A DNA stretch of 64,000 bases from Paramoeba atlantica (GCA_977017575.1 CDRNVI010000021.1:372001-436000), one strand, 5' to 3'. Counted from the first letter of the stretch, positions 7,345 to 64,000 are shown. Numbers and translations are program-made. Notes: a model not told the origin generated them from the letters alone.

Positions 7345-8775
7345 ATGGAAGAGTCACACACTGCGATAGCAGAGATGCAGGAGAAATTACAAACACTCCA
7401 AGCAAGTTTTCTTCCATCTCCTCAGCAATTATTCGCTCTGAAGCGGTATATGATGGCTGAGATGGATACTGGTTTACGTGGTTCAAGTTCTCTTGCAATG
7501 CTACCTACTTTTATAGAAAAACCGAATCAACGAAGAAGCGTTTCTCCTGGAATCTATTACGCTGTAGATCTTGGTGGTACTCATTGTCGTGTCTTGTGTT
7601 TAGCCCAGTGGAGTCACCGAAAGAAATGCCTTTTGCAGCAATCCCGTATAGTGCCCGATGCTGTAAAGAAAGGATCCTTGAACGCCTTGTTTGACTTCGT
7701 AGTCGAATGCGTGGCTACAGCTGAGTCTCTATCCACCAACGATTCTATATCACGAAGCAATTCTTGCCGCATCCCACTTGCCTTTACTTTTTCATTTCCT
7801 GTAAAACAAACCGGATTGTGCAGTGGTACTCTTCTGCGGTGGACGAAGGGTTACGCCATTTCGGATGGGAATCAGCGAGATATTGTTGAGTGCTTGCGAG
7901 AGGCACTGATAAGGAAAGGGTTACACCACTTTCATGTGGTTGCACTATGTAATGACACAGTCGGCACCCTCCTTTCGCAAGAATTTTACGGACATGAAGC
8001 TGATATTGGTTGTATATTGGGTACAGGAACGAATTCGTGCTATTGGAGGAAATCTTATAACACTTCAAGTGACTCGGACAAGGAAGATGAGACAGATCTT
8101 CGCTTAACGGCCACGAACATTGAGTGGGGTAATCTTGGCAGTGGACAAAAAAATACACCGCTTCCAGATACTTCTTACGATCGCACTTTAGATCAAAACA
8201 GCACGAATCCTGGCGAGCAGAGATTCGAGAAATTGATTTCTGGGAGGTACCTGGGTGAAATTTCACGACTCATACTTCTGGACATACTTCCTCTTCATAG
8301 TCACTCTCGTAAGTTGCTCTCGAAAGTCAATGCCATAACATCTTCCACGATGAGCAGATTTATGAACAATTCTATCAAGATAAATGGAACCTCTGGTTTC
8401 GATATGACTGATTCAAGTGAAACTCGAATTTTTAAAACTGTTTTCAAAATTGTGAGAAATCGCTCAGCACTGCTTGTTGCCGGGGCATTGTCTGCACTAG
8501 TAGACGTGATCATCAAGGAAAGAAACATTTCCAGAGAAATACGAATTGCAGTAGATGGGGGCTTATTTGAGTGCATGCCTCAATACCGAAAGATTCTTAC
8601 CCTAGGTTTACAGCAGTTATGTGGTTTGTACAGTGCAAAAATTATACATGTCAAACAAGGCAGTGGGTTGGGCGCTCTCTGGCTAGCCACTCATGGAGAA
8701 ATCAAGGAGAGACCATCTGCTTGTCACACCGAAAAGGAAGCTCAGATAGTTGGTACTAGTGTATCCAAATTATAA
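7345..8775 (+). CDS. HK: Hexokinase with C-terminal PTS1 (-SKL)
   Basis: DLGGT, FTFSFP, RWTKG, NDTVGTL, GTGTN, NIEWG, FEKLISGRYLGEI, DGGL; ends tcc aaa tta taa (SKL*). Confidence 0.93.
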   Translation: MEESHTAIAEMQEKLQTLQASFLPSPQQLFALKRYMMAEMDTGLRGSSSLAMLPTFIEKPNQRRSVSPGIYYAVDLGGTHCRVLCLAQWSHRKKCLLQQSRIVPDAVKKGSLNALFDFVVECVATAESLSTNDSISRSNSCRIPLAFTFSFPVKQTGLCSGTLLRWTKGYAISDGNQRDIVECLREALIRKGLHHFHVVALCNDTVGTLLSQEFYGHEADIGCILGTGTNSCYWRKSYNTSSDSDKEDETDLRLTATNIEWGNLGSGQKNTPLPDTSYDRTLDQNSTNPGEQRFEKLISGRYLGEISRLILLDILPLHSHSRKLLSKVNAITSSTMSRFMNNSIKINGTSGFDMTDSSETRIFKTVFKIVRNRSALLVAGALSALVDVIIKERNISREIRIAVDGGLFECMPQYRKILTLGLQQLCGLYSAKIIHVKQGSGLGALWLATHGEIKERPSACHTEKEAQIVGTSVSKL

Positions 8776-8839
8776 GCACATTTCTGAAAACTGAGAAAGT
8801 GCTTTTGTATTGCTATTTGCGTTTACGACCTACCGTTTA

Positions 8840-9143
8840 CCGTGCACCCCCAGTAAGAGAATGGGTTTTGGGTCAAAATGGTCAAATCTCTCTTACTGGG
8901 GGGGATGCTTTTTTGGACAGTTTTCTCCCAACTTTTCTCCCAACTTTTTTTTGTGAAAACGTGTTAAAGCATTTAGCGCCCACAATTAAAATGTGGGTTA
9001 CCCCCGAGGCCCCCAACATGCGGACACTCACCCCCTACTCCCTATACGCCTCCTATAGGGATCCCGTGCCAAATCTCTCTCACCGGGGGTCTCTTACTCA
9101 GCTCGAAAAGGGCTGAGTCTCTCTTACTGGGAGGGGTCTACGG
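8840..9143. mobile_element. MITE-like non-autonomous element, Tc1/mariner type (imperfect ~22-bp TIRs, TA flanks)
   Basis: TA|CCGTGCACCCCCAGTAAGAGA ... TCTCTTACTGGGAGGGGTCTACGG|TA; extra internal TCTCTTACTGGGGG at ~8889. Confidence 0.65.
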
Positions 9144-9384
9144 TAGTGATCCGAAAGATGTTGCAGCATACGGGAGAACGACAGGGTTAGTTATGCTACA
9201 CCCAAGCCAAAAATTATTATCGTTAAAATTCATGGTACAAAAATTATTGTTTTTTAATTGAAAGTTGATTAGTTTCGACAATAATTAAAAACTCAATAAT
9301 ATTAGTCGGCAGTGTATTTACATAGTAGTTATATTTAGAAAGCTACTTCTGGGCAAAGTCTTATTTTCTTATATTTTATTTTAG

Positions 9385-10029
9385 ATGCCTGTACCAACCA
9401 GTCTACAAACCTCTGAGTACGACTACCTGTTCAAAATCCTTTTGATAGGAGATAGTGGAGTCGGAAAAAGTTGCTTGTTATTGCGTTTCGCCGATGACAC
9501 CTACGCCGAGAGCTTTATCTCTACGATTGGGGTCGACTTCAAGATACGTACTGTTCGGATGGATGGAAAAACAATCAAACTGCAATTGTGGGACACTGCC
9601 GGACAGGAAAGGTTTCGCACCATCACGTCAAGTTATTATAGAGGAGCTCATGGTATTATTGTAGTATATGATGTCACTAACCGCGAAAGTTTCGAACATG
9701 TAAAAGGGTGGCTTCATGAAATCTCTAAGCATGCCAGTGACAATGTGAATAAAATTCTCATCGGGAACAAATGCGATCTCGTGGGTCAAAGAAAAGTGGA
9801 AAAGGAAACTGCGCAACAGTTTGCGGATTCACTGAGTATACCTTTTATGGAGGCCTCTGCGAAAAAGGCTACGAATGTAGAGGAGGCATTTAACAAGATG
9901 ACAATGGAAATTAAGCGTCGTGTGACAGCACAAAGGGCGTCTACGGGACAAAGGTCCAGTGGAATACGTCTCAACCCTCCAGGAGCAAGAAACACAGTCA
10001 AGTCGAAAGGATGTTGCTCTATCATGTAG
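9385..10029 (+). CDS. RAB1: Rab1/Ypt1 GTPase
   Basis: [57 protein letters not shown]-terminal CC prenylation motif; pyrimidine tract+AG directly before ATG. Confidence 0.96.
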
Positions 10030-47652: not shown

Positions 47653-49338
47653 ATGCAAACGGCACTTGCACCGGCACCCCAACAGAAGGCACAAACGATT
47701 CTCGGGATTAATGGAGTTCGTACCACAGGGGAAGACGTGCGTGAGGAAAATGTTACTGCTGCCCTTGCAGTGGCAAACCTTGTACGCAGCTCATTGGGTC
47801 CTGTGGGACTGGACAAGATGTTAGTGGATGAAGTTGGGGAGGTGACCGTGACGAACGACGGTGCTACGTTGCTACGCAAAATGGAAGTCGAGCACCCTGC
47901 AGGTTGCATGCTGGTTGAATTAGCAAAACAGCAAGATGAGGAAGTGGGAGACGGAACAACGAGCGTCGTGCTTTTAGCAGCTGAACTCTTGCGCAACGCT
48001 CAGAGTCTTATTCGTCATCATATACATCCGACAAGCATTATAACGGGATACAAGATAGCAATGCGAGAATCCATACGAATCATTACGGAAAAATTATGTA
48101 CTCCTATCAAAGCTGAAAATAAAGAACTTTTGTTGAGCATAGCACATACTTCCCTTGCATCTAAAATTTTGGGACATGCTGATCCAAACGTTTTCGCGCA
48201 CATCGTTGTTGACGCAGTGACATCGGTACGTACTGTAGATGAGGATACTGGCGACTTGAAGTTTCCCAGAAAGGCCATCGGTATATTAAAACAACATGGC
48301 AAGTCTCTGACGGAGAGTACTTTAATTCGTGGATACGCTCTTAGCGGCAGCCGCGTTTCTCAAGGGATGCCAACTCGAGTGAGTACGGCACGACTAGCCC
48401 TTCTTGACTTTGATTTACGTGCCGTGAAACTTCGACTTGGCATTTCAGCCACTATTCACGATCCCTCCAAGGCCGAGGATATGCGGCGACGAGAGTTAGA
48501 TATTACGCGAGAGCGGGTACGAAAGATACTTGCGTCAGGTGCAAACGTAATCCTAACTTCTTGTGGAATGGAGGACGCAATCCAAAAGATTCTAGTCGAC
48601 GCCGGGGCCATGGGGCTACGTCGTGTACCCAAGGAAGACCTGCGACGCATCGCGCGAGTGACAGGAGCAAAAATTTGTACGACAATGTGTGATCTCGAGG
48701 GGGGGGAAACATTTAGCTCTAGTGATCTTGGAACCGCCGCCTCGGTTTCCGAAATACGCTTCGGGGAGGACGAATGTGTGGTGATCGAGGGAACTACTGG
48801 GTGTGCTGCAGCTTCCATTCTACTTCGTGGATCCTCATCGCTCACACTTGATGAAGGCGAAAGGGCACTGAACGACGCACTTTGTGTAGTGTCGAAGGCG
48901 TTAGAAACCGGATCCGTGGTAGCAGGCGGCGGTGCTGTAGAGGGATATCTCCATGGCTACCTTGAAGCATTCGCTCAAAGTCTCAATTCTCGCGAGCAAA
49001 TAGCCATCGCTTCTTTTGCGGAAGCACTGTTGATTATTCCCAAACAACTGGCCTTGAATGCCGCACTTGATGCCCCGGATCTTGTAGCAAAACTTAGAAC
49101 TCAACATGCCATTGCCTTCGAACCAGTACAAACTCCATCATCGAAATCTATGCACAGCGGGCTCGATCTCCAGGGAAATTGTTTGCGAAACAATATGCAG
49201 GCTGGGGTAGTAGAGCCTCGTGCGTCGAAGATAAAAGCCCTTCAGCTCGCTACTGAGGCCGCCGTAACAATTTTGCGCATAGACGATTGTGTGCGTCTGA
49301 ACCCTCCACCTGAACCCGAGGATCCAAGACGAAGATAA
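47653..49338 (+). CDS. TCP1: T-complex protein 1 subunit alpha (CCT1)
   Basis: GEDVREENVTAALAVANLVRSSLGPVGLDKMLVD, VTNDGAT, EVGDGTTSVV, ATEAAVTILRIDD. Confidence 0.96.
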   Translation: MQTALAPAPQQKAQTILGINGVRTTGEDVREENVTAALAVANLVRSSLGPVGLDKMLVDEVGEVTVTNDGATLLRKMEVEHPAGCMLVELAKQQDEEVGDGTTSVVLLAAELLRNAQSLIRHHIHPTSIITGYKIAMRESIRIITEKLCTPIKAENKELLLSIAHTSLASKILGHADPNVFAHIVVDAVTSVRTVDEDTGDLKFPRKAIGILKQHGKSLTESTLIRGYALSGSRVSQGMPTRVSTARLALLDFDLRAVKLRLGISATIHDPSKAEDMRRRELDITRERVRKILASGANVILTSCGMEDAIQKILVDAGAMGLRRVPKEDLRRIARVTGAKICTTMCDLEGGETFSSSDLGTAASVSEIRFGEDECVVIEGTTGCAAASILLRGSSSLTLDEGERALNDALCVVSKALETGSVVAGGGAVEGYLHGYLEAFAQSLNSREQIAIASFAEALLIIPKQLALNAALDAPDLVAKLRTQHAIAFEPVQTPSSKSMHSGLDLQGNCLRNNMQAGVVEPRASKIKALQLATEAAVTILRIDDCVRLNPPPEPEDPRRR

Positions 49339-49767
49339 ACTCCAATTCTGAGCAACTGGGCATTATTGCTAATAAGACAACTTACAACATGAGACCAGAC
49401 CTACTATAGAAATTTACCTCCATACTCAAAGATCACACGTAGCAACAAATAAAAAGCAAGCCACCGGATCAAAAGAATGCAAAGAATTCTCTTTCAAAAA
49501 AAAATCGAATACTCAAGTTCATTCATTTACCTTACTATTTCACCGATAAATCATTTTTTAAATGCCTACATGCACTCGGCATAGATTCCTTTCATTTATA
49601 ACACCTTTTCAGGATAATTCAGTAACAAATCTATAAATCGGGGAAATCAATCGAACGACTGGCGTTGCAACAATACAAACATCAAACAGTGATTAACAAA
49701 CAGCAATCCAACAACTCATTTATCGTCCAATGTATTCTGTAAATTCGTATTCCTTTTTTCTATAACC

Positions 49768-50157
49768 ATGGCTACCCCGAAGAGCAGCAAGAAGGCGAAG
49801 AGCAGCCAGAAGAGCCGTGGCGCGAAGACGGGTCTGATCTTTCCCGTGGGCCGCATCGGCTCCATGCTCCGCCGTGGACGCTACACCAAGCGTGTGGCCT
49901 CCGCCGCCCCGGTGTACCTCGCCGCTGTGTTGGAGTACCTCACTGCCGAGCTTCTCGAGCTCTCCGGTAAGGTTGCGGGCCAGCACCACAAGAAGCGTAT
50001 TACCCCTCGTGCCGTCACACTCGCCGTCCGTCACGACGAGGAGCTTTCTCAGCTGCTAAGCAACGTCACCTTCACTCAGGGCGGCGTACTTCCCAACCTT
50101 CACGACATGCTCAAGAAGAAGAAGGCATCCCGCAAGGCGAGCAGCCAACAGGTGTAA
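49768..50157 (+). CDS. H2A: Histone H2A, copy 1 (3-aa shorter tail)
   Basis: [37 protein letters not shown]; lacks the STK tripeptide. Confidence 0.96.
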
Positions 50158-50484
50158 GGTGCAATGAGTGCGTTATAATACGTTGGCCCGCGTCACGTCA
50201 CACAATCGGTACCCTTGTGAAATCCTTCTACCATGGTGCTTCCCTTTCTTATGCACCATCCTAGGCATGTATTGACATGTACCTTGGCTCAGTAGAGCTA
50301 CATTTTGTGAAGTTTCGGCAGATGCAATCAACGACATTGCGCACATCATACTAGGATACTGGTGGAGTATCGCGTGGGTGATACTTACCACGGTTCTCAA
50401 TACATGTAAAACTTAAACCGTTCATTACGTAACCTCAATTCTTCGCCCTTATCCTTCTTTTTCTCCTACTCTACTTTATAACAC

Positions 50485-50811
50485 ATGGCGAAAGCAGCTA
50501 AAGTCGCAAAGAAGAGCTCTGGTCACCGCAAGTCCAAGAAGACGTTCAACACCTACATCTACCGCACCCTGAAGCAGATCCACAAAAACGTGGGATTCAG
50601 CAGCAAAGGGATCAAAGTTGTGAACTCTTTCGTGCGAGACATCTTTGAGCGCCTTGCCGTCGAGGCAGCCTCCCTCACGCGCTTCAACAAGACCAAAACG
50701 TTGACTTCCCGCGAAGTACAAACCGCAGTGCGCCTGACTCTTCCCGCGGAGCTCGCAAAGCACGCAATGGCTGAGGGAACGAAGGCTGTCGCCAAGTTGG
50801 CCTCCCACTAA
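50485..50811 (+). CDS. H2B: Histone H2B, copy 1 (FVRD variant)
   Basis: [49 protein letters not shown]. Confidence 0.96.
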
Positions 50812-51136
50812 ATGCTGTGTGGTTCGACCAGGTAGCATGCAGAGGTGCAGCATCCGATCGTCATGAACTTTGTTGTAAAAAATGTTATTCAAACGTACAA
50901 AGCCGTCGTGTTCACTATTAAGGTATACTTAGCAGTGAGTTTCATTCTGTGACGGACAAGTACGATTTACACTATATTCATGACATTATGAGAATGTATG
51001 CATGCACCGGCTCCATCTTATGTGAGGTACATTCTTGATATTGCTCGCCCCTCTTTTCAAAATTTATTGTGACAAACCGAAAAAACGTGTTCTATTGAAA
51101 ACCAGACATTTTTACTATCTATCCTCATTTTCACTC

Positions 51137-51565
51137 ATGGCTCGCACCAAGGAATCGTCTCGTAAATCTACGGGGAAGGTACCACGCGCCGGTCTCGTCT
51201 CCAAAGGCAAGAAGACAAGCTCTTCCAAGGCGAAGAAAGCGTCCAGCGGCTCCAGTGGCACCAAGAAGCCCCACCGCTTTCGCCCGGGGACCGTCGCCCT
51301 CCGTGACATCAAAAAGTACCAGAAGGGCACTGAACTTCTCCTCCGCAAGCTTCCCTTCCAGCGTCTGGTCCGTGAGATTGCTCTCAGCGGCAAAGATGGT
51401 CTGCGTTTCCAAGCCAGCGCCGTCCTCGCCATGCAGGAGGCAACGGAGGCCCACATGGTCAACTTGTTCGCTGACACCTGTCTGTGCGCTATCCACGGTC
51501 GCCGGGTAACCATCATGCCGAAGGACGTCCAGCTCGCCCGCCGTCTCCGCGGCGAACGCTTCTAA
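51137..51565 (+). CDS. H3: Histone H3, copy 1
   Basis: [46 protein letters not shown]; ATG at 51137. Confidence 0.96.
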
Positions 51566-51899
51566 GCGTTTGTGAAATCCATTGAGTTCGGGAAGCCTCG
51601 CATACCCACTACGACAGCAACGATCTGAGGTTCTTTGTGCATTTCCTTCATTTTTGCACAAAGCCTTAATATGCTTTCTATGACATTAATGTTATTTGTA
51701 GTATCGGGTATAGGATGAATGCTTCACCTCCCATTCCCTCAACATAGACCACAGCGGCGTCGTGGGGCAAAACACACGCACACTGTGTGCGACGCTCCAC
51801 AAACGAAATGGTTGTGTATTATGACGGATCTTGGCGCTCGTACGTAGTTTCTTTTTATCGTACTTTAGATTTTTTCATCTTACTTCCTATTCATTTCAA

Positions 51900-52208
51900 A
51901 TGGCGAAAGGCAAGAAATCTGGTGATGCTAAGGGCGCACACGGCACGAAACGCCAAAAGAAGGCATTGAAGGACAACATCCGCGGAATCACAAAGCCCGC
52001 AATTCGCCGCCTTGCGCGCCGTGGTGGTGTCAAGCGCATCAGCGGAATCATGTACGAAGAGGTCCGTGGGATCCTCAAGTCTTTCGTGGAGGGCGTTGTC
52101 CGTGACAGCGTGACGTACACTGAGCACAGCAAGCGCCAGACGGTCACTGCTCTCGACGTCGTGTACGCTCTCCGCAAGCGTGGACGCATGTTGTACGGAT
52201 ACGCATAA
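51900..52208 (+). CDS. H4: Histone H4, copy 1
   Basis: Trypanosome-type MAKGKKSG tail; [31 protein letters not shown]; ATG at 51900. Confidence 0.96.
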
Positions 52209-52528
52209 GGATGACACTGAACACATGTTGATGCAACGGGTCTGAATCTCCACAAGGGTAATCGTCGGGTTCTCTCTCTGTCCCCGTGAATCATTTCTGT
52301 GCGCATTTTCTTTCGTATGAGTCTTGAGTTGCTTCTCTGGTATCATACTAGCGCTTGAAACATTCCGCCGTTTGGAGAAAACAATTGACCTATGAATCAA
52401 CTCTTCGTAAGAAAACTATAATGTGCTCATAAGCAATACATCACGTCTTCTTTGTCCATTCACTCATTCGTAACAACTACTATTTTTTGAAAGAACTCTT
52501 ATTACTTTTCTCTCTTATTCCTATCACT

Positions 52529-52927
52529 ATGGCTACCCCGAAGAGCAGCAAGAAGGCGAAGAGCACCAAGAGCAGCCAGAAGAGCCGTGGCGCGAAGACG
52601 GGTCTGATCTTTCCCGTGGGCCGCATCGGCTCCATGCTCCGCCGTGGACGCTACACCAAGCGTGTGGCCTCCGCCGCCCCGGTGTACCTCGCCGCTGTGT
52701 TGGAGTACCTCACTGCCGAGCTTCTCGAGCTCTCCGGTAAGGTTGCGGGCCAGCACCACAAGAAGCGTATTACCCCTCGTGCCGTCACACTCGCCGTCCG
52801 TCACGACGAGGAGCTTTCTCAGCTGCTAAGCAACGTCACCTTCACTCAGGGCGGCGTACTTCCCAACCTTCACGACATGCTCAAGAAGAAGAAGGCATCC
52901 CGCAAGGCGAGCAGCCAACAGGTGTAA
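52529..52927 (+). CDS. H2A: Histone H2A, copy 2
   Basis: As copy 1 plus STK. Confidence 0.96.
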
Positions 52928-53251
52928 GGTGCAATGAGTGCGTTATAATACGTCCCGCGTCACGTCACACAATCGGTACCCTTGTGAGATCCTTCTAGCA
53001 TGGTGCTTCCCTTTCTTATGCACCATCCTAGGCATGTATTGACATGTACCTTGGCTCAGTAGAGCTACATTTTGTGAAGTTTCGGCGGATGCAATCAACG
53101 ACATTGCGCACATCATACTAGGATACTGGTGGAGTATCGCGTGGGTGATACTTACCACGGTTCTCAATACATGTAAAACTTAAACCGTTCATTACGTAAC
53201 CTCAATTCTTCGCCCTTATCCTTCTTTTTCTCCTACTCTACTTTATAACAC

Positions 53252-53578
53252 ATGGCGAAAGCAGCTAAAGTCGCAAAGAAGAGCTCTGGTCACCGCAAGT
53301 CCAAGAAGACCTTCAACACCTACATCTACCGCACCCTGAAGCAGATCCACAAAAACGTGGGATTCAGCAGCAAAGGGATCAAAGTTGTGAACTCTTTCGT
53401 GCAAGACATCTTTGAGCGCCTTGCCGTCGAGGCAGCCTCCCTCACGCGCTTCAACAAGACCAAAACGTTGACTTCCCGCGAAGTACAAACCGCAGTGCGC
53501 CTGACTCTTCCCGCGGAGCTCGCAAAGCACGCAATGGCTGAGGGAACGAAGGCTGTCGCCAAGTTGGCCTCCCACTAA
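53252..53578 (+). CDS. H2B: Histone H2B, copy 2
   Basis: FVQD allele. Confidence 0.96.
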
Positions 53579-53903
53579 ATGCTGTGTGGTTCGACCAGGT
53601 AGCATGCAGAGGTGCAGCATGCCATCGTCATGAACTTTGTTGTAAAAAATGTTATTCGAACGTACAAAGCCGTCGTGTTCACTATTAAGGTATACTTAGC
53701 AGTGAGTTTCATTCTGTGACGGACAAGTACGATTTACACTATATTCATGACATTATGAGAATGTATGCATGCACCGGCTCCATCTTATGTGAGGTACATT
53801 CTTGATATTGCTCGCCCCTCTTTTCAAAATTTATTGTGACAAACCGAAAAAACGTGTTCTATTGAAAACCAGACACTTTTACTATCTATCCTCATTTTCA
53901 CTC

Positions 53904-54332
53904 ATGGCTCGCACCAAGGAATCGTCTCGTAAATCTACGGGGAAGGTACCACGCGCCGGTCTCGTCTCCAAAGGCAAGAAGACAAGCTCTTCCAAGGCGA
54001 AGAAAGCGTCCAGCGGCTCCAGTGGCACCAAGAAGCCCCACCGCTTTCGCCCGGGGACCGTCGCCCTCCGTGACATCAAAAAGTACCAGAAGGGCACTGA
54101 ACTTCTCCTCCGCAAGCTTCCCTTCCAGCGTCTGGTCCGTGAGATTGCTCTCAGCGGCAAAGATGGTCTGCGTTTCCAAGCCAGCGCCGTCCTCGCCATG
54201 CAGGAGGCAACGGAGGCCCACATGGTCAACTTGTTCGCTGACACCTGTCTGTGCGCTATCCACGGTCGCCGGGTAACCATCATGCCGAAGGACGTCCAGC
54301 TCGCCCGCCGTCTCCGCGGCGAACGCTTCTAA
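53904..54332 (+). CDS. H3: Histone H3, copy 2
   Basis: Same protein as copy 1. Confidence 0.96.
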
Positions 54333-54666
54333 GCGTTTGTGAAATCCATTGAGTTCGGGAAGCCTCGCATACCCACTACGACAGCAACGATCTGAGGTTC
54401 TTTGTGCATTTCCTTCATTTTTGCACAAAGCCTTAATATGCTTTCTATGACATTAATGTTATTTGTAGTATCGGGTATAGAATGAATGCTTCACCTCCCA
54501 TTCCCTCAACATAGACCACAGCGGCGTCGTGGGGCAAAACACACGCACACTGTGTGCGACGCTCCACAAACGAAATGGTTGTGTATTATGACGGATCTTG
54601 GCGCTCGTACGTAGTTTCTTTTTATCGTACTTTAGATTTTTTCATCTTACTTCCTATTCATTTCAA

Positions 54667-54975
54667 ATGGCGAAAGGCAAGAAATCTGGTGATGCTAAGG
54701 GCGCACACGGCACGAAACGCCAAAAGAAGGCATTGAAGGACAACATCCGCGGAATCACAAAGCCCGCAATTCGCCGCCTTGCGCGCCGTGGTGGTGTCAA
54801 GCGCATCAGCGGAATCATGTACGAAGAGGTCCGTGGGATCCTCAAGTCTTTCGTGGAGGGCGTTGTCCGTGACAGCGTGACGTACACTGAGCACAGCAAG
54901 CGCCAGACGGTCACTGCTCTCGACGTCGTGTACGCTCTCCGCAAGCGTGGACGCATGTTGTACGGATACGCATAA
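54667..54975 (+). CDS. H4: Histone H4, copy 2
   Basis: Same protein as copy 1. Confidence 0.96.
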
Positions 54976-55295
54976 GGATGACACTGAACACATGTTGATG
55001 CAACGGGTCTGAATCTCCACAAGGGTAATCGTCGGGTTCTCTCTCTGTCCCCGTGAATCATTTCTGTGCGCATTTTCTTTCGTATGAGTCTTGAGTTGCT
55101 TCTCTGGTATCATACTAGCGCTTGAAACATTCCGCCGTTTGGAGAAAACAATTGACCTATGAATCAACTCTTCGTAAGAAAACTATAATGTGCTCATAAG
55201 CAATACATCACGTCTTCTTTGTCCATTCACTCATTCGTAACAACTACTATTTTTTGAAAGAACTCTTATTACTTTTCTCTCTTATTCCTATCACT

Positions 55296-55694
55296 ATGGC
55301 TACCCCGAAGAGCAGCAAGAAGGCGAAGAGCACCAAGAGCAGCCAGAAGAGCCGTGGCGCGAAGACGGGTCTGATCTTTCCCGTGGGCCGCATCGGCTCC
55401 ATGCTCCGCCGTGGACGCTACACCAAGCGTGTGGCCTCCGCCGCCCCGGTGTACCTCGCCGCTGTGTTGGAGTACCTCACTGCCGAGCTTCTCGAGCTCT
55501 CCGGTAAGGTTGCGGGCCAGCACCACAAGAAGCGTATTACCCCTCGTGCCGTCACACTCGCCGTCCGTCACGACGAGGAGCTTTCTCAGCTGCTAAGCAA
55601 CGTCACCTTCACTCAGGGCGGCGTACTTCCCAACCTTCACGACATGCTCAAGAAGAAGAAGGCATCCCGCAAGGCGAGCAGCCAACAGGTGTAA
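55296..55694 (+). CDS. H2A: Histone H2A, copy 3
   Basis: Same protein as copy 2. Confidence 0.96.
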
Positions 55695-56018
55695 GGTGCA
55701 ATGAGTGCGTTATAATACGTCCCGCGTCACGTCACACAATCGGTACCCTTGTGAGATCCTTCTAGCATGGTGCTTCCCTTTCTTATGCACCATCCTAGGC
55801 ATGTATTGACATGTACCTTGGCTCAGTAGAGCTACATTTTGTGAAGTTTCGGCGGATGCAATCAACGACATTGCGCACATCATACTAGGATACTGGTGGA
55901 GTATCGCGTGGGTGATACTTACCACGGTTCTCAATACATGTAAAACTTAAACCGTTCATTACGTAATCTCAATTCTTCGCCCTTATCCTTCTTTTTCTCC
56001 TACTCTACTTTATAACAC

Positions 56019-56345
56019 ATGGCGAAAGCAGCTAAAGTCGCAAAGAAGAGCTCTGGTCACCGCAAGTCCAAGAAGACCTTCAACACCTACATCTACCGCA
56101 CCCTGAAGCAGATCCACAAAAACGTGGGATTCAGCAGCAAAGGGATCAAAGTTGTGAACTCTTTCGTGCAAGACATCTTTGAGCGCCTTGCCGTCGAGGC
56201 AGCCTCCCTCACGCGCTTCAACAAGACCAAAACGTTGACTTCCCGCGAAGTACAAACCGCAGTGCGCCTGACTCTTCCCGCGGAGCTCGCAAAGCACGCA
56301 ATGGCTGAGGGAACGAAGGCTGTCGCCAAGTTGGCCTCCCACTAA
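56019..56345 (+). CDS. H2B: Histone H2B, copy 3
   Basis: Same protein as copy 2. Confidence 0.96.
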
Positions 56346-56670
56346 ATGCTGTGTGGTTCGACCAGGTAGCATGCAGAGGTGCAGCATGCCATCGTCATGA
56401 ACTTTGTTGTAAAAAATGTTATTCGAACGTACAAAGCCGTCGTGTTCACTATTAAGGTATACTTAGCAGTGAGTTTCATTCTGTGACGGACAAGTACGAT
56501 TTACACTATATTCATGACATTATGAGAATGTATGCATGCACCGGCTCCATCTTATGTGAGGTACATTCTTGATATTGCTCGCCCCTCTTTTCAAAATTTA
56601 TTGTGACAAACCGAAAAAACGTGTTCTATTGAAAACCAGACACTTTTACTATCTATCCTCATTTTCACTC

Positions 56671-57099
56671 ATGGCTCGCACCAAGGAATCGTCTCGTAAA
56701 TCTACGGGGAAGGTACCACGCGCCGGTCTCGTCTCCAAAGGCAAGAAGACAAGCTCTTCCAAGGCGAAGAAAGCGTCCAGCGGCTCCAGTGGCACCAAGA
56801 AGCCCCACCGCTTTCGCCCGGGGACCGTCGCCCTCCGTGACATCAAAAAGTACCAGAAGGGCACTGAACTTCTCCTCCGCAAGCTTCCCTTCCAGCGTCT
56901 GGTCCGTGAGATTGCTCTCAGCGGCAAAGATGGTCTGCGTTTCCAAGCCAGCGCCGTCCTCGCCATGCAGGAGGCAACGGAGGCCCACATGGTCAACTTG
57001 TTCGCTGACACCTGTCTGTGCGCTATCCACGGTCGCCGGGTAACCATCATGCCGAAGGACGTCCAGCTCGCCCGCCGTCTCCGCGGCGAACGCTTCTAA
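56671..57099 (+). CDS. H3: Histone H3, copy 3
   Basis: Same protein as copy 1. Confidence 0.96.
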
Positions 57100-57433
57100 G
57101 CGTTTGTGAAATCCATTGAGTTCGGGAAGCCTCGCATACCCACTACGACAGCAACGATCTGAGGTTCTTTGTGCATTTCCTTCATTTTTGCACAAAGCCT
57201 TAATATGCTTTCTATGACATTAATGTTATTTGTAGTATCGGGTATAGAATGAATGCTTCACCTCCCATTCCCTCAACATAGACCACAGCGGCGTCGTGGG
57301 GCAAAACACACGCACACTGTGTGCGACGCTCCACAAACGAAATGGTTGTGTATTATGACGGATCTTGGCGCTCGTACGTAGTTTCTTTTTATCGTACTTT
57401 AGATTTTTTCATCTTACTTCCTATTCATTTCAA

Positions 57434-57742
57434 ATGGCGAAAGGCAAGAAATCTGGTGATGCTAAGGGCGCACACGGCACGAAACGCCAAAAGAAGGCAT
57501 TGAAGGACAACATCCGCGGAATCACAAAGCCCGCAATTCGCCGCCTTGCGCGCCGTGGTGGTGTCAAGCGCATCAGCGGAATCATGTACGAAGAGGTCCG
57601 TGGGATCCTCAAGTCTTTCGTGGAGGGCGTTGTCCGTGACAGCGTGACGTACACTGAGCACAGCAAGCGCCAGACGGTCACTGCTCTCGACGTCGTGTAC
57701 GCTCTCCGCAAGCGTGGACGCATGTTGTACGGATACGCATAA
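57434..57742 (+). CDS. H4: Histone H4, copy 3
   Basis: Same protein as copy 1. Confidence 0.96.
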
Positions 57743-58062
57743 GGATGACACTGAACACATGTTGATGCAACGGGTCTGAATCTCCACAAGGGTAATCGTC
57801 GGGTTCTCTCTCTGTCCCCGTGAATCATTTCTGTGCGCATTTTCTTTCGTATGAGTCTTGAGTTGCTTCTCTGGTATCATACTAGCGCTTGAAACATTCC
57901 GCCGTTTGGAGAAAACAATTGACCTATGAATCAACTCTTCGTAAGAAAACTATAATGTGCTCATAAGCAATACATCACGTCTTCTTTGTCCATTCACTCA
58001 TTCGTAACAACTACTATTTTTTGAAAGAACTCTTATTACTTTTCTCTCTTATTCCTATCACT

Positions 58063-58461
58063 ATGGCTACCCCGAAGAGCAGCAAGAAGGCGAAGAGCAC
58101 CAAGAGCAGCCAGAAGAGCCGTGGCGCGAAGACGGGTCTGATCTTTCCCGTGGGCCGCATCGGCTCCATGCTCCGCCGTGGACGCTACACCAAGCGTGTG
58201 GCCTCCGCCGCCCCGGTGTACCTCGCCGCTGTGTTGGAGTACCTCACTGCCGAGCTTCTCGAGCTCTCCGGTAAGGTTGCGGGCCAGCACCACAAGAAGC
58301 GTATTACCCCTCGTGCCGTCACACTCGCCGTCCGTCACGACGAGGAGCTTTCTCAGCTGCTAAGCAACGTCACCTTCACTCAGGGCGGCGTACTTCCCAA
58401 CCTTCACGACATGCTCAAGAAGAAGAAGGCATCCCGCAAGGCGAGCAGCCAACAGGTGTAA
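58063..58461 (+). CDS. H2A: Histone H2A, copy 4
   Basis: Same protein as copy 2. Confidence 0.96.
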
Positions 58462-58785
58462 GGTGCAATGAGTGCGTTATAATACGTCCCGCGTCACGTC
58501 ACACAATCGGTACCCTTGTGAGATCCTTCTAGCATGGTGCTTCCCTTTCTTATGCACCATCCTAGGCATGTATTGACATGTACCTTGGCTCAGTAGAGCT
58601 ACATTTTGTGAAGTTTCGGCGGATGCAATCAACGACATTGCGCACATCATACTAGGATACTGGTGGAGTATCGCGTGGGTGATACTTACCACGGTTCTCA
58701 ATACATGTAAAACTTAAACCGTTCATTACGTAATCTCAATTCTTCGCCCTTATCCTTCTTTTTCTCCTACTCTACTTTATAACAC

Positions 58786-59112
58786 ATGGCGAAAGCAGCT
58801 AAAGTCGCAAAGAAGAGCTCTGGTCACCGCAAGTCCAAGAAGACCTTCAACACCTACATCTACCGCACCCTGAAGCAGATCCACAAAAACGTGGGATTCA
58901 GCAGCAAAGGGATCAAAGTTGTGAACTCTTTCGTGCAAGACATCTTTGAGCGCCTTGCCGTCGAGGCAGCCTCCCTCACGCGCTTCAACAAGACCAAAAC
59001 GTTGACTTCCCGCGAAGTACAAACCGCAGTGCGCCTGACTCTTCCCGCGGAGCTCGCAAAGCACGCAATGGCTGAGGGAACGAAGGCTGTCGCCAAGTTG
59101 GCCTCCCACTAA
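58786..59112 (+). CDS. H2B: Histone H2B, copy 4
   Basis: Same protein as copy 2. Confidence 0.96.
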
Positions 59113-59437
59113 ATGCTGTGTGGTTCGACCAGGTAGCATGCAGAGGTGCAGCATCCGATCGTCATGAACTTTGTTGTAAAAAATGTTATTCAAACGTACA
59201 AAGCCGTCGTGTTCACTATTAAGGTATACTTAGCAGTGAGTTTCATTCTGTGACGGACAAGTACGATTTACACTATATTCATGACATTATGAGAATGTAT
59301 GCATGCACCGGCTCCATCTTATGTGAGGTACATTCTTGATATTGCTCGCCCCTCTTTTCAAAATTTATTGTGACAAACCGAAAAAACGTGTTCTATTGAA
59401 AACCAGACACTTTTACTATCTATCCTCATTTTCACTC

Positions 59438-59864
59438 ATGGCTCGCACCAAGGAATCGTCTCGTAAATCTACGGGGAAGGTACCACGCGCCGGTCTCGTC
59501 TCCAAAGGCAAGAAGACAGCTCTTCCAAGGCGAAGAAAGCGTCCAGCGGCTCCAGTGGCACCAAGAAGCCCCACCGCTTTCGCCCGGGACCGTCGCCCTC
59601 CGTGACATCAAAAAGTACCAGAAGGGCACTGAACTTCTCCTCCGCAAGCTTCCCTTCCAGCGTCTGGTCCGTGAGATTGCTCTCAGCGGCAAAGATGGTC
59701 TGCGTTTCCAAGCCAGCGCCGTCCTCGCCATGCAGGAGGCAACGGAGGCCCACATGGTCAACTTGTTCGCGGACACCTGTCTGTGCGCTATCCACGGTCG
59801 CCGGGTAACCATCATGCCGAAGGACGTCCAGCTCGCCCGCCGTCTCCGCGGCGAACGCTTCTAA
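59438..59864 (+). pseudogene. H3: Histone H3, copy 4, frameshifted (or assembly error)
   Basis: Two 1-nt deletions: gacaagc to gacagc (~59517) and cccggggacc to cccgggacc (~59586). Confidence 0.6.
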
Positions 59865-60198
59865 GCGTTTGTGAAATCCATTGAGTTCGGGAAGCCTCGC
59901 ATACCCACTACGACAGCAACGATCTGAGGTTCTTTGTGCATTTCCTTCATTTTTGCACAAAGCCTTAATATGCTTTCTATGACATTAATGTTATTTGTAG
60001 TATCGGGTATAGGATGAATGCTTCACCTCCCATTCCCTCAACATAGACCACAGCGGCGTCGTGGGGCAAAACACACGCACACTGTGTGCGACGCTCCACA
60101 AACGAAATGGTTGTGTATTATGACGGATCTTGGCGCTCGTACGTAGTTTCTTTTTATCGTACTTTAGATTTTTTCATCTTACTTCCTATTCATTTCAA

Positions 60199-60507
60199 AT
60201 GGCGAAAGGCAAGAAATCTGGTGATGCTAAGGGCGCACACGGCACGAAACGCCAAAAGAAGGCATTGAAGGACAACATCCGCGGAATCACAAAGCCCGCA
60301 ATTCGCCGCCTTGCGCGCCGTGGTGGTGTCAAGCGCATCAGCGGAATCATGTACGAAGAGGTCCGTGGGATCCTCAAGTCTTTCGTGGAGGGCGTTGTCC
60401 GTGACAGCGTGACGTACACTGAGCACAGCAAGCGCCAGACGGTCACTGCTCTCGACGTCGTGTACGCTCTCCGCAAGCGTGGACGCATGTTGTACGGATA
60501 CGCATAA
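60199..60507 (+). CDS. H4: Histone H4, copy 4
   Basis: Same protein as copy 1. Confidence 0.96.
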
Positions 60508-60827
60508 GGATGACACTGAACACATGTTGATGCAACGGGTCTGAATCTCCACAAGGGTAATCGTCGGGTTCTCTCTCTGTCCCCGTGAATCATTTCTGTG
60601 CGCATTTTCTTTCGTATGAGTCTTGAGTTGCTTCTCTGGTATCATACTAGCGCTTAAAACATTCCGCCGTTTGGAGAAAACAATTGACCTATGAATCAAC
60701 TCTTCGTAAGAAAACTATAATGCGCTCATAAGCAATACATCACGTCTTCTTTGTCCATTCACTCATTCGTAACAACTACTATTTTTTGAAAGAACTCTTA
60801 TTACTTTTCTCTCTTATTCCTATCACT

Positions 60828-61226
60828 ATGGCTACCCCGAAGAGCAGCAAGAAGGCGAAGAGCACCAAGAGCAGCCAGAAGAGCCGTGGCGCGAAGACGG
60901 GTCTGATCTTTCCCGTGGGCCGCATCGGCTCCATGCTCCGCCGTGGACGCTACACCAAGCGTGTGGCCTCCGCCGCCCCGGTGTACCTCGCCGCTGTGTT
61001 GGAGTACCTCACTGCCGAGCTTCTCGAGCTCTCCGGTAAGGTTGCGGGCCAGCACCACAAGAAGCGTATTACCCCTCGTGCCGTCACACTCGCCGTCCGT
61101 CACGACGAGGAGCTTTCTCAGCTGCTAAGCAACGTCACCTTCACTCAGGGCGGCGTACTTCCCAACCTTCACGACATGCTCAAGAAGAAGAAGGCATCCC
61201 GCAAGGCGAGCAGCCAACAGGTGTAA
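60828..61226 (+). CDS. H2A: Histone H2A, copy 5
   Basis: Same protein as copy 2. Confidence 0.96.
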
Positions 61227-61553
61227 GGTGCAATGAGTGCGTTATAATACGTTGTCCCGCGTCACGTCACACAATCGGTACCCTTGTGAGATCCTTCTAG
61301 CATGGTGCTTCCCTTTCTTATGCACCATCCTAGGCATGTATTGACATGTACCTTGGCTCAGTAGAGCTACATTTTGTGAAGTTTCGGCGGATGCAATCAA
61401 CGACATAGCGCACATCATACTAGGATACTGGTGGAGTATCGCGTGGGTGATACTTACCACGGTTCTCAATACATGTAAAACTTAAACCGTTCATTACGTA
61501 ACCTCAATTCTTCGCCCTTATCCTTCTTTTTCTCCTACTCTACTTTATAACAC

Positions 61554-61880
61554 ATGGCGAAAGCAGCTAAAGTCGCAAAGAAGAGCTCTGGTCACCGCAA
61601 GTCCAAGAAGACCTTCAACACCTACATCTACCGCACCCTGAAGCAGATCCACAAAAACGTGGGATTCAGCAGCAAAGGGATCAAAGTTGTGAACTCTTTC
61701 GTGCAAGACATCTTTGAGCGCCTTGCCGTCGAGGCAGCCTCCCTCACGCGCTTCAACAAGACCAAAACGTTGACTTCCCGCGAAGTACAAACCGCAGTGC
61801 GCCTGACTCTTCCCGCGGAGCTCGCAAAGCACGCAATGGCTGAGGGAACGAAGGCTGTCGCCAAGTTGGCCTCCCACTAA
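61554..61880 (+). CDS. H2B: Histone H2B, copy 5
   Basis: Same protein as copy 2. Confidence 0.96.
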
Positions 61881-62205
61881 ATGCTGTGTGGTTCGACCAG
61901 GTAGCATGCAGAGGTGCAGCATGCCATCGTCATGAACTTTGTTGTAAAAAATGTTATTCAAACGTACAAAGCCGTCGTGTTCACTATTAAGGTATACTTA
62001 GCAGTGAGTTTCATTCTGTGACGGACAAGTACGATTTACACTATATTCATGACATTATGAGAATGTATGCATGCACCGGCTCCATCTTATGTGAGGTACA
62101 TTCTTGATATTGCTCGCCCCTCTTTTCAAAATTTATTGTGACAGACCGAAAAAACGTGTTCTATTGAAAACCAGACACTTTTACTATCTATCCTCATTTT
62201 CACTC

Positions 62206-62634
62206 ATGGCTCGCACCAAGGAATCGTCTCGTAAATCTACGGGGAAGGTACCACGCGCCGGTCTCGTCTCCAAAGGCAAGAAGACAAGCTCTTCCAAGGC
62301 GAAGAAAGCGTCCAGCGGCTCCAGTGGCACCAAGAAGCCCCACCGCTTTCGCCCGGGGACCGTCGCCCTCCGTGACATCAAAAAGTACCAGAAGGGCACT
62401 GAACTTCTCCTCCGCAAGCTTCCCTTCCAGCGTCTGGTCCGTGAGATTGCTCTCAGCGGCAAAGATGGTCTGCGTTTCCAAGCCAGCGCCGTCCTCGCCA
62501 TGCAGGAGGCAACGGAGGCCCACATGGTCAACTTGTTCGCTGACACCTGTCTGTGCGCTATCCACGGTCGCCGGGTAACCATCATGCCGAAGGACGTCCA
62601 GCTCGCCCGCCGTCTCCGCGGCGAACGCTTCTAA
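62206..62634 (+). CDS. H3: Histone H3, copy 5
   Basis: Same protein as copy 1. Confidence 0.96.
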
Positions 62635-62968
62635 GCGTTTGTGAAATCCATTGAGTTCGGGAAGCCTCGCATACCCACTACGACAGCAACGATCTGAGGT
62701 TCTTTGTGCATTTCCTTCATTTTTGCACAAAGCCTTAATATGCTTTCTATGACATTAATGTTATTTGTAGTATCGGGTATAGGATGAATGCTTCACCTCC
62801 CATTCCCTCAACATAGACCACAGCGGCGTCGTGGGGCAAAACACACGCACACTGTGTGCGACGCTCCACAAACGAAATGGTTGTGTATTATGACGGATCT
62901 TGGCGCTCGTACGTAGTTTCTTTTTATCGTACTTTAGATTTTTTCATCTTACTTCCTATTCATTTCAA

Positions 62969-63277
62969 ATGGCGAAAGGCAAGAAATCTGGTGATGCTAA
63001 GGGCGCACACGGCACGAAACGCCAAAAGAAGGCATTGAAGGACAACATCCGCGGAATCACAAAGCCCGCAATTCGCCGCCTTGCACGCCGTGGTGGTGTC
63101 AAGCGCATCAGCGGAATCATGTACGAAGAGGTCCGTGGGATCCTCAAGTCTTTCGTGGAGGGCGTTGTCCGTGACAGCGTGACGTACACTGAGCACAGCA
63201 AGCGCCAGACGGTCACTGCTCTCGACGTCGTGTACGCTCTCCGCAAGCGTGGACGCATGTTGTACGGATACGCATAA
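62969..63277 (+). CDS. H4: Histone H4, copy 5
   Basis: Same protein as copy 1. Confidence 0.96.
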
Positions 63278-63597
63278 GGATGACACTGAACACATGTTGA
63301 TGCAACGGGTCTGAATCTCCACAAGGGTAATCGTCGGGTTCTCTCTCTGTCCCCGTGAATCATTTCTGTGCGCATTTTCTTTCGTATGAGTCTTGAGGTG
63401 CTTCTCTGGTATCATACTAGCGCTTGAAACATTCCGCCGTTTGGAGAAAACAATTGACCTATGAATCAACTCTTCGTAAGAAAACTATAATGCGCTCATA
63501 AGCAATACATCACGTCTTCTTTGTCCATTCACTCATTCGTAACAACTACTATTTTTTGAAAGAACTCTTATTACTTTTCTCTCTTATTCCTATCACT

Positions 63598-63996
63598 ATG
63601 GCTACCCCGAAGAGCAGCAAGAAGGCGAAGAGCACCAAGAGCAGCCAGAAGAGCCGTGGCGCGAAGACGGGTCTGATCTTTCCCGTGGGCCGCATCGGCT
63701 CCATGCTCCGCCGTGGACGCTACACCAAGCGTGTGGCCTCCGCCGCCCCGGTGTACCTCGCCGCTGTGTTGGAGTACCTCACTGCCGAGCTTCTCGAGCT
63801 CTCCGGTAAGGTTGCGGGCCAGCACCACAAGAAGCGTATTACCCCTCGTGCCGTCACACTCGCCGTCCGTCACGACGAGGAGCTTTCTCAGCTGCTAAGC
63901 AACGTCACCTTCACTCAGGGCGGCGTACTTCCCAACCTTCACGACATGCTCAAGAAGAAGAAGGCATCCCGCAAGGCGAGCAGCCAACAGGTGTAA
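63598..63996 (+). CDS. H2A: Histone H2A, copy 6
   Basis: Same protein as copy 2. Confidence 0.96.
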
Positions 63997-64000
63997 GGTG

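Follow-up and report, generated by a model that had tools for sequence, protein, structure and literature searches.

A head-to-tail array of core histone gene quartets in a stretch of probable prokinetoplastid DNA

Introduction

How is the supply of the four nucleosome subunits kept in balance when genes have no promoters of their own, and is the histone layout known from trypanosomes the original one? These questions are raised by a stretch of 64,000 nucleotides listed under Paramoeba atlantica (GCA_977017575.1, CDRNVI010000021.1:372001-436000), here called the window, in which the genes for H2A, H2B, H3 and H4 form a unit that is repeated head to tail from position 49768 to the window end. 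In kinetoplastids, there is almost no control at the start of transcription, and the number and position of genes set their output. The textbook layout of histone genes in this group, with one array for each type, comes from trypanosomes and Leishmania. Trypanosoma brucei keeps every histone type in a separate array; approximately 43 copies of H4 are split between two arrays of about 15 kb, and an H3 array adjoins the tubulin array. Linked and unlinked histone genes offer a natural comparison for the balance of nucleosome subunits without promoters.

Here, we describe the array, its transcripts, and the corresponding loci of related organisms. With a probability of roughly three in four, the window carries part of a chromosomal array of roughly ten quartet units set in a one-strand gene cluster of a prokinetoplastid, and the quartet was inherited from a kinetoplastid ancestor. 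Quartets outside the trypanosome group, found in the window, in Perkinsela and in environmental contigs, change the picture of the ancestral state.

Results

Structure of the quartet array

The head-to-tail repeat at 49768-64000 (+ strand) was confirmed by direct period scanning and self-comparison, which peaked at a shift of 2767 bp, and by the recurrence of gene ends, the final 60 nt of every histone gene in the unit returning every 2765 to 2770 bp. The start codon of H2A was taken as the unit boundary. Start codons at 49768, 52529, 55296, 58063, 60828, and 63598 delimit five full units of 2761, 2767, 2767, 2765, and 2770 bp, followed by a partial unit of 403 nt, which gives 5.14 copies in the window; the array runs past the window end at 64000. 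In each unit, H2A, H2B, H3, and H4 follow one another in this order on the + strand. A quartet has been defined as a unit of exclusively the four core histone genes and a quartet array as the tandem repeat of such a unit (PMC13525598), and this is what was found here. The longest period considered by Tandem Repeats Finder was 500, and the array is therefore missing from its output.

The genes were identified in unit 2, which served as the reference copy (52529-55295, 2767 bp). Pfam supports the identities of three of them. The H2A gene (52529-52927, 132 amino acids [aa]) matched PF16211 and PF00125 as well as solved H2A chains; the H2B gene (53252-53578, 108 aa) matched PF00125 with an E value of 7e-16 and has homologues named H2B; and the H3 gene (53904-54332, 142 aa) matched PF00125 with an E value of 1.7e-40. 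The H4 gene (54667-54975, 102 aa, with its true start at 54667) was weak in Pfam. Its top match among solved structures was chain B of 8com, annotated as histone H4 (E value, 6e-43), an entry for the T. brucei nucleosome, and its product is 89 to 92% identical to the H4 of relatives. An exact-sequence look-up of the window H4 in public records found no record; the window H2B did return one.

The spacers of unit 2 measure 324 nt (52928-53251), 325 nt (53579-53903), 334 nt (54333-54666), and 320 nt (54976-55295). No + strand open reading frame (ORF) longer than 42 aa lies wholly inside any spacer, and thus the unit contains no H1 gene. An earlier note on this DNA, made from the sequence alone, had given the unit, its gene order, strand, size, copy count, and lack of H1; the period scan, unit alignment, and ORF check bear it out on every one of these points.

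The five full units are nearly identical, with 33 variable columns in an alignment of 2770 and pairwise identities of 0.995 to 1.000. Unit 1, the edge copy (49768-52528, 2761 bp), is the most divergent, differing from the other units by 11 to 14 substitutions. Its H2A gene (49768-50157) carries a 9-bp in-frame deletion at 49798, by which the residues STK of the N-terminal tail are lost and the product is shortened to 129 aa, and its H2B (50485-50811) carries R51 instead of the Q found in the remaining units; its H3 and H4 genes lie at 51137-51565 and 51900-52208. This pattern is the classic divergence of a copy at the edge of an array. Unit 3 (55296-58062, 2767 bp; H2A 55296-55694, H2B 56019-56345, H3 56671-57099, H4 57434-57742) differs from unit 2 by a single substitution. 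Unit 4 (58063-60827, 2765 bp; H2A 58063-58461, H2B 58786-59112, H4 60199-60507) holds the sole exception to intact quartets: its H3 gene (59438-59864) has two 1-bp deletions, after nucleotides 80 and 149 of the coding sequence, loses its frame and reads for 55 aa. Either this copy is a pseudogene, or the assembly or consensus is in error here. Unit 5 occupies 60828-63597 (2770 bp; H2A 60828-61226, H2B 61554-61880, H3 62206-62634, H4 62969-63277), and unit 6 (63598-64000) comprises a complete H2A gene (63598-63996) before the window ends. All of these genes are on the + strand.

Flanking gene, array edge, and source organism

To the left of the array lies a single-copy gene on the + strand for the alpha subunit of CCT (TCP-1) (47653-49338; PF00118, E value of 1e-149, supported by homologues and a tree), which served for organism placement and as a depth baseline. 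The spacer between this gene and the first H2A gene (49339-49767, + strand) is unique. It gave a local alignment score of only 21 against the H4-to-H2A spacer, and the array therefore begins close to the first H2A start. The context is that of a one-strand gene cluster, since 25 of the 26 ORFs of at least 200 aa in 1-49800 are on the + strand.

Among named sequences, the window CCT-alpha is closest to those of trypanosomes (approximately 60% identity) and of Perkinsela CCAP 1560/4 (58%); metagenome proteins are 63 to 68% identical to it. In a quick maximum-likelihood tree, it formed a clade with two homologues (P0123, its sister, and P0122) and the Perkinsela clade with an approximate likelihood-ratio test (aLRT) value of 100. 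The members of this clade include Perkinsela CCAP 1560/4, an MMETSP sequence, and ENA and JGI sequences, and the window falls outside the Perkinsela subclade. In an H2B tree, the window again grouped with the Perkinsela clade (aLRT, 94). Placement was based on these two single-gene quick trees, and in both the window lies with Perkinsela in Prokinetoplastina, apart from trypanosomatids and neobodonids. We read the source of the window as a prokinetoplastid, related to Perkinsela CCAP 1560/4 and clearly distinct from it. The sequences are of kinetoplastid type, as are the flanks, and transcripts carry the spliced leader described below; on these grounds an origin from the host amoeba or from a virus was rejected.

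Independent contigs and copy number

The unit is present in five public runs from two studies, whose contigs were compared over 49000-54900. In run X4, a 5655-nt contig spans the unique flank and reaches 30 nt into the array, to 49797. Run X1 yielded a single 2797-nt contig over 50154-52953, which equals the period plus 30. With words of 31 nt, the length used for Logan contigs, a closed repeat yields a contig of just this size. A separate ENA contig of 4606 bp (L004) reads H4-H2A-H2B-H3-H4-H2A-H2B. In X4, the word depth of the array contigs was 691 to 714, and that of the flank contig was 75. This ratio suggests an array of about 9 to 10 units.

Transcripts and trans-splicing

Run X5, from 2015 and from the second of the two studies, gave contigs whose 5' ends leave the genome and carry a kinetoplastid spliced leader ending in ACAGTTTCTGTACCTTGTTG. 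This leader resembles the prokinetoplastid leader motif TTACAGTTTCTGTACTT (PMC7859406). The joints lie at 50453 (H2B), 51868 (H4), and 52493 (H2A), 31 to 35 nt before the start codons. The leader implies that these contigs derive from mature RNA and that the H2B, H4, and H2A mRNAs are each trans-spliced separately; the leader-bearing contigs did not cover the 5' end of H3, so trans-splicing was seen for three of the four mRNAs.

For H4 and H2A, the joint follows an AG (51867-51868 and 52492-52493, respectively), which leaves 5' untranslated regions (UTRs) at 51869-51899 and 52494-52528. The H2B 5' UTR, as read from the loose end of an X5 contig, is pyrimidine-rich and 32 nt long (50453-50484). 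Here, a single contig places the joint after a genomic AT, not AG, and this holds in every copy (window 50451-50453; L004 1213-1215). The stretch of about 110 nt before the H2B start codon is free of AG. A non-canonical trans-splice acceptor would explain the H2B joint, and so would an artefact of the library. All three 5' UTRs are on the + strand. The mRNA contigs end at 50973, 52368, 53031, and 54475, which is 104 to 162 nt past the stop codons and suggests short 3' UTRs.

By the rough measure of word depth, the X5 contigs reached 1448 for H2B, 1181 for H4, 1589 to 1618 for H2A, and 1478 for H3, as against 9 to 10 for CCT-alpha. The four histone mRNA contigs were thus within 1.4-fold of one another, and all were far above CCT-alpha even when about ten gene copies are allowed for. 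A further difference from the flanking gene lies in the GC content at third codon positions, which is 0.43 for CCT-alpha and 0.67 to 0.79 for the histone genes, a strong codon bias that points to selection for expression. Polycistronic transcription is suggested, indirectly, by the one-strand context and by the leader on three mRNAs.

The four spacers were searched for shared signals. They have no 7-mer in common and no 9- to 12-mer in common with one or two mismatches allowed, and neither the trypanosomatid cycling element ([CA]ATAGAA) nor the PUF9 motif (TTGTAC) occurs in them. No Rfam family matched 49300-55400 on either strand up to an E value of 5, and thus the 3' stem-loop of replication-dependent metazoan histone genes was not found. 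The conserved 3' UTR motif that the earlier note had suggested looking for across the four spacers was therefore not borne out.

Histone quartets in related organisms

Layouts in relatives were obtained by tblastn of the four window histones against fetched loci. All quartets described here lie on one strand. In Perkinsela CCAP 1560/4 (GCA_001235845.1), one locus (L001) reads H3-H4-H2B-H2A in a span of 2 kb, with an HMG-box gene next in line, and a second (L002) has the same order with an H4 fragment after H4. In the assembly ERZ25071330, H2B-H2A-H3-H4 occurs at at least four places (L011-L014), with a DDE transposase gene interrupting one of the copies, and in ERZ25074155 it occurs at three (L003, L015, L016). 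These quartets resemble that of the window in that the four histones lie within about 2 kb, are 70 to 90% identical to the window's, include an H2A with the tail SQQV, and come from prokinetoplastids. In contrast, their cyclic order is H2B-H2A-H3-H4, with H2A and H2B swapped; the quartets occur singly or scattered (2 to 4 or more loci) rather than in a long tandem array; and their spacers are shorter, at about 140 to 210 nt (139 to 158 nt in the ERZ assemblies, 152 to 208 nt in Perkinsela) versus 320 to 334 nt in the window.

Tandem quartets were found in environmental contigs. Those from freshwater and other metagenomes (L005-L010, L017, L018) repeat H2A-H2B-H4-H3 with or without a fifth gene, which codes for a lysine-rich HMG-box protein; the period is 2989 bp in L005, where the spacers measure 189 to 225 nt. 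A JGI metagenome contig (L097) reads H3-H4-H2B-H2A, and its ends overlap by 73 nt, which indicates a tandem repeat with a period of 2595 bp. Contigs from five JGI samples (L099-L103) are tandem with a period of 2575 bp and have the cyclic order H2A-H2B-H3-H4, as in the window. Like the window, these environmental loci are same-strand repeats of similar length (periods of 2575, 2595, and about 2775 to 2989 bp). Unlike it, they belong to other lineages, with an H4 64 to 92% identical to that of the window.

Every kinetoplastid-type contig examined from outside the trypanosomatids, if long enough for four genes, had the four on one strand, and in four short contigs (L020, L021, L052, L079) H2A adjoins H2B on one strand. 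The non-kinetoplastid contigs of the same metagenome scan, which made up the majority of the returns, carry the classical divergent pairs of H2A on the minus strand and H2B on the plus strand. In Phytomonas, the H2B gene stands alone among non-histone genes. Together with the single-type arrays of T. brucei, this upholds the contrast with trypanosomatids that had been noted before. Trypanosomatid arrays share with the window kinetoplastid-type histones, same-strand tandem repeats in polycistronic clusters, and dosage by copy number. However, each array of T. brucei holds a single histone type, and the window alternates the four types in every unit.

In the H2B tree, rooted on non-kinetoplastids, L097 and L099 shared a clade (aLRT, 100) with Trypanoplasma borreli and Phytomonas; as the alignment has only 110 columns, this is moderate evidence. 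The tails of H2A follow the same split. In the window, a canonical H2A closes with SQQV (52913-52924), which places an SQ motif like that of H2A.X at its extreme C terminus. The same tail occurs in L001, L003, L005, and L011-L015, with SQAV in L017 and SQAAV in L018. The tails of L097 and L020 end in ATPSA, which we take to be the trypanosomatid type. SQQV or SQAV thus marks the window, the Perkinsela clade, L005, and L017, and ATPSA marks L097 and L020. Overall, the quartet has been amplified in tandem in at least four lineages besides that of the window, and two of the environmental lineages group with metakinetoplastids by H2B. Gene order has shifted several times among the lineages, which show three cyclic orders (H2A-H2B-H3-H4, H2B-H2A-H3-H4, and H2A-H2B-H4-H3). 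The adjacency of H2A to H2B and of H3 to H4 was considered as a signal, since it is present in all three; four of the six possible orders have both pairs, so the adjacency is not significant and carries no weight.

The layout is not peculiar to the genome of the window: same-strand quartets are carried by Perkinsela CCAP 1560/4, by two further large assemblies, and by several kinetoplastid-type lineages from the environment. The earlier note had named, as a finding that would undo its case, prior documentation of the arrangement as standard in related kinetoplastids. In sequence data the arrangement is indeed there, and linked histone genes are already visible in the public Perkinsela annotation; in our literature search, we found linkage of the core histone genes described for no kinetoplastid. 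Histones go unmentioned in the genome paper on Perkinsela, the genome papers on Bodo saltans and on prokinetoplastids are silent on histone arrangement, and in a 2026 review that spans more than 250 species, trypanosomes come up solely in connection with H1.

Comparison with animal histone arrays

Tandem arrays of quartets or quintets are known in animals, including sea urchin, grasshopper, Drosophila, and newt, with units of 3.7 to 13 kb (PMC13525598). In the sea urchin, a cluster of five genes is repeated in tandem (PMC2794192). The earlier note had set the window apart from animal units, which it described as usually including divergent pairs. Tandem multi-histone units are indeed found there; same-strand units, however, are already known in echinoderms and grasshoppers (PMC13525598). 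The animal arrays and that of the window have in common all core histones in one unit, head-to-tail repetition, and homogenized units. The window differs in its 2.77-kb unit, which is below the animal range, in the lack of H1 and of a detected 3' stem-loop, in the spliced leader seen on three of its mRNAs, in the position of its genes inside a long one-strand cluster and probably not behind promoters of their own, and in a copy number of about ten, not dozens to hundreds. The parts, the proteins, and the type of repeat are all of known kinds, and the gain is comparative and modest.

Discussion

A model for the array

From what is known of kinetoplastid biology, RNA polymerase II would read through the array from upstream. 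Each histone mRNA would then be cut out alone, with the leader added 31 to 35 nt before the start codon, as seen for H2B, H4, and H2A, and the 3' end formed about 100 to 165 nt after the stop codon, the latter step probably being coupled to the next splice site. As such genomes lack gene-specific promoters, copy number would be the main route to higher output. Amplification of a unit with one gene of each type would lift all four genes together and would keep them at 1:1:1:1 through every unequal crossover, and dosage may be the reason for the amplification. Recombination, by unequal exchange or conversion, would keep the units 99.5 to 100% alike and leave the edge copy the most divergent. On the trypanosomatid line, the ancestral linked quartet would have been broken up into single-gene arrays.

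Is the balance selected?

The earlier note had proposed an operon-like unit that fixes both the dosage and the transcription of nucleosome components at 1:1:1:1. Part of this stands. With one gene of each type per unit, equal, lock-step gene dosage follows from the structure, and the depths of the mRNA contigs are similar (1180 to 1618); that this stoichiometry is a selected function would be a further step, and a possible one. We tentatively propose that an ancestral, tandemly repeatable quartet was kept because it locks dosage and co-transcription at 1:1:1:1, and that the trypanosomatid arrays are its derived break-up. If the unit is both ancestral and dosage-locking, the layout of histone genes would be a marker of stoichiometry under polycistronic transcription and a test case for it.

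A serious competitor, which we hold to be quite possible but somewhat short of an even bet, is that the unit has no selected operon-like role. An inherited quartet would have chanced to be amplified by unequal crossing-over, balance would be set post-transcriptionally, and equal numbers would be a by-product. Trypanosomes keep their histones balanced with separate arrays, relatives have single or dispersed quartets with no tandem amplification, the order within the unit varies among lineages, and the four spacers have no common motif. In addition, the RNA depth exceeds the expectation from copy number by about 15-fold, which points to post-transcriptional control. On the other hand, the linkage of the four genes persists across deep kinetoplastid lineages despite the reshuffling of their order, which suggests some constraint; at least four lineages have amplified the quartet as a whole; and the four mRNA contig depths agree within 1.4-fold.

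Ancestral or convergent linkage?

Between the ancestral and convergent origins that the earlier note had left side by side, the quartets found across lineages favor the former. Linked quartets are seen on both sides of the deepest kinetoplastid split among the sequences compared, and an ancestral linked quartet is the simplest history. Judged from these comparisons of sequence, the linked quartet is probably ancestral to kinetoplastids and the single-gene arrays of trypanosomes derived. Convergence would mean that the quartet arose independently in the lineage of the window and in the others from an unlinked ancestor. The three cyclic orders and the unlinked arrays of the trypanosomatids examined would fit such a history, but it has to account for four genes on one strand in every adequate kinetoplastid-type contig outside the trypanosomatids, on both sides of the H2B tree, for the recurrence of the window order in the distant L099 group and of the Perkinsela-clade order in L097, and for the divergent H2A/H2B pairs that the non-kinetoplastid contigs of the same scan have instead. 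We consider it improbable.

It is very improbable indeed that the array is an artefact of assembly, whether one or a few quartets wrongly expanded or a repeat collapsed or misjoined: the two single-base deletions in the H3 gene of unit 4 could be consensus errors, and the support comes from contigs, but the units carry distinct, partly shared variants with the most divergent copy at the edge, as in real arrays, the head-to-tail order recurs in L004, the X1 contig has the length of a closed repeat, the array contigs are about nine times deeper than the flank, and the unit is held in runs of two studies.

Several points weigh against an array of about ten units with an ancestral, balance-keeping quartet. 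Placement of the environmental contigs depends entirely on H2A tail motifs and on the H2B tree with its 110 columns, which is moderate evidence. The comparison of layouts covers prokinetoplastids, trypanosomatids, and environmental contigs, and two H2B homology searches returned no entry for Bodo saltans, which among free-living species is closest to the trypanosomatids. The order of the genes differs among lineages, so that linkage may be ancestral and order not, and repeated independent assembly of quartets in separate lineages keeps a residual probability. Because trypanosomes balance their histones with separate arrays, linkage is not required for stoichiometry. The comparison of runs was made on assembled contigs, not raw reads; contig word depth is rough and a poor gauge of copy number and expression; and read-through and polyadenylation sites were deduced rather than directly observed.

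Additional observations at histone loci

Within a species, the histone spacers are nearly equal in length and unrelated in sequence, as seen in the window, L001, L005, L011, L012, and L015. The HMG-box protein encoded by the fifth gene of the L005 group (L005 2527-2961; L006 677-1111) has 144 aa and an H1-like front half rich in lysine and alanine. The HMG-box gene of Perkinsela CCAP 1560/4 (L001 9073-9588) stands directly after H2A. The transposase gene in ERZ25071330 belongs to the DDE_3 type and lies on the opposite strand between H2A and H3 (L013 14537-15802; L014 9162-10427). In the second Perkinsela locus, the extra partial H4 lies between H4 and H2B at L002 7523-7792, and the H2A gene (8603-8836) is uncalled in the public record. 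In the ENA contig L003, at 8450-9784, public gene calls on the minus strand overlie H2A, H3, and H4 genes on the plus strand that are supported by tblastn.

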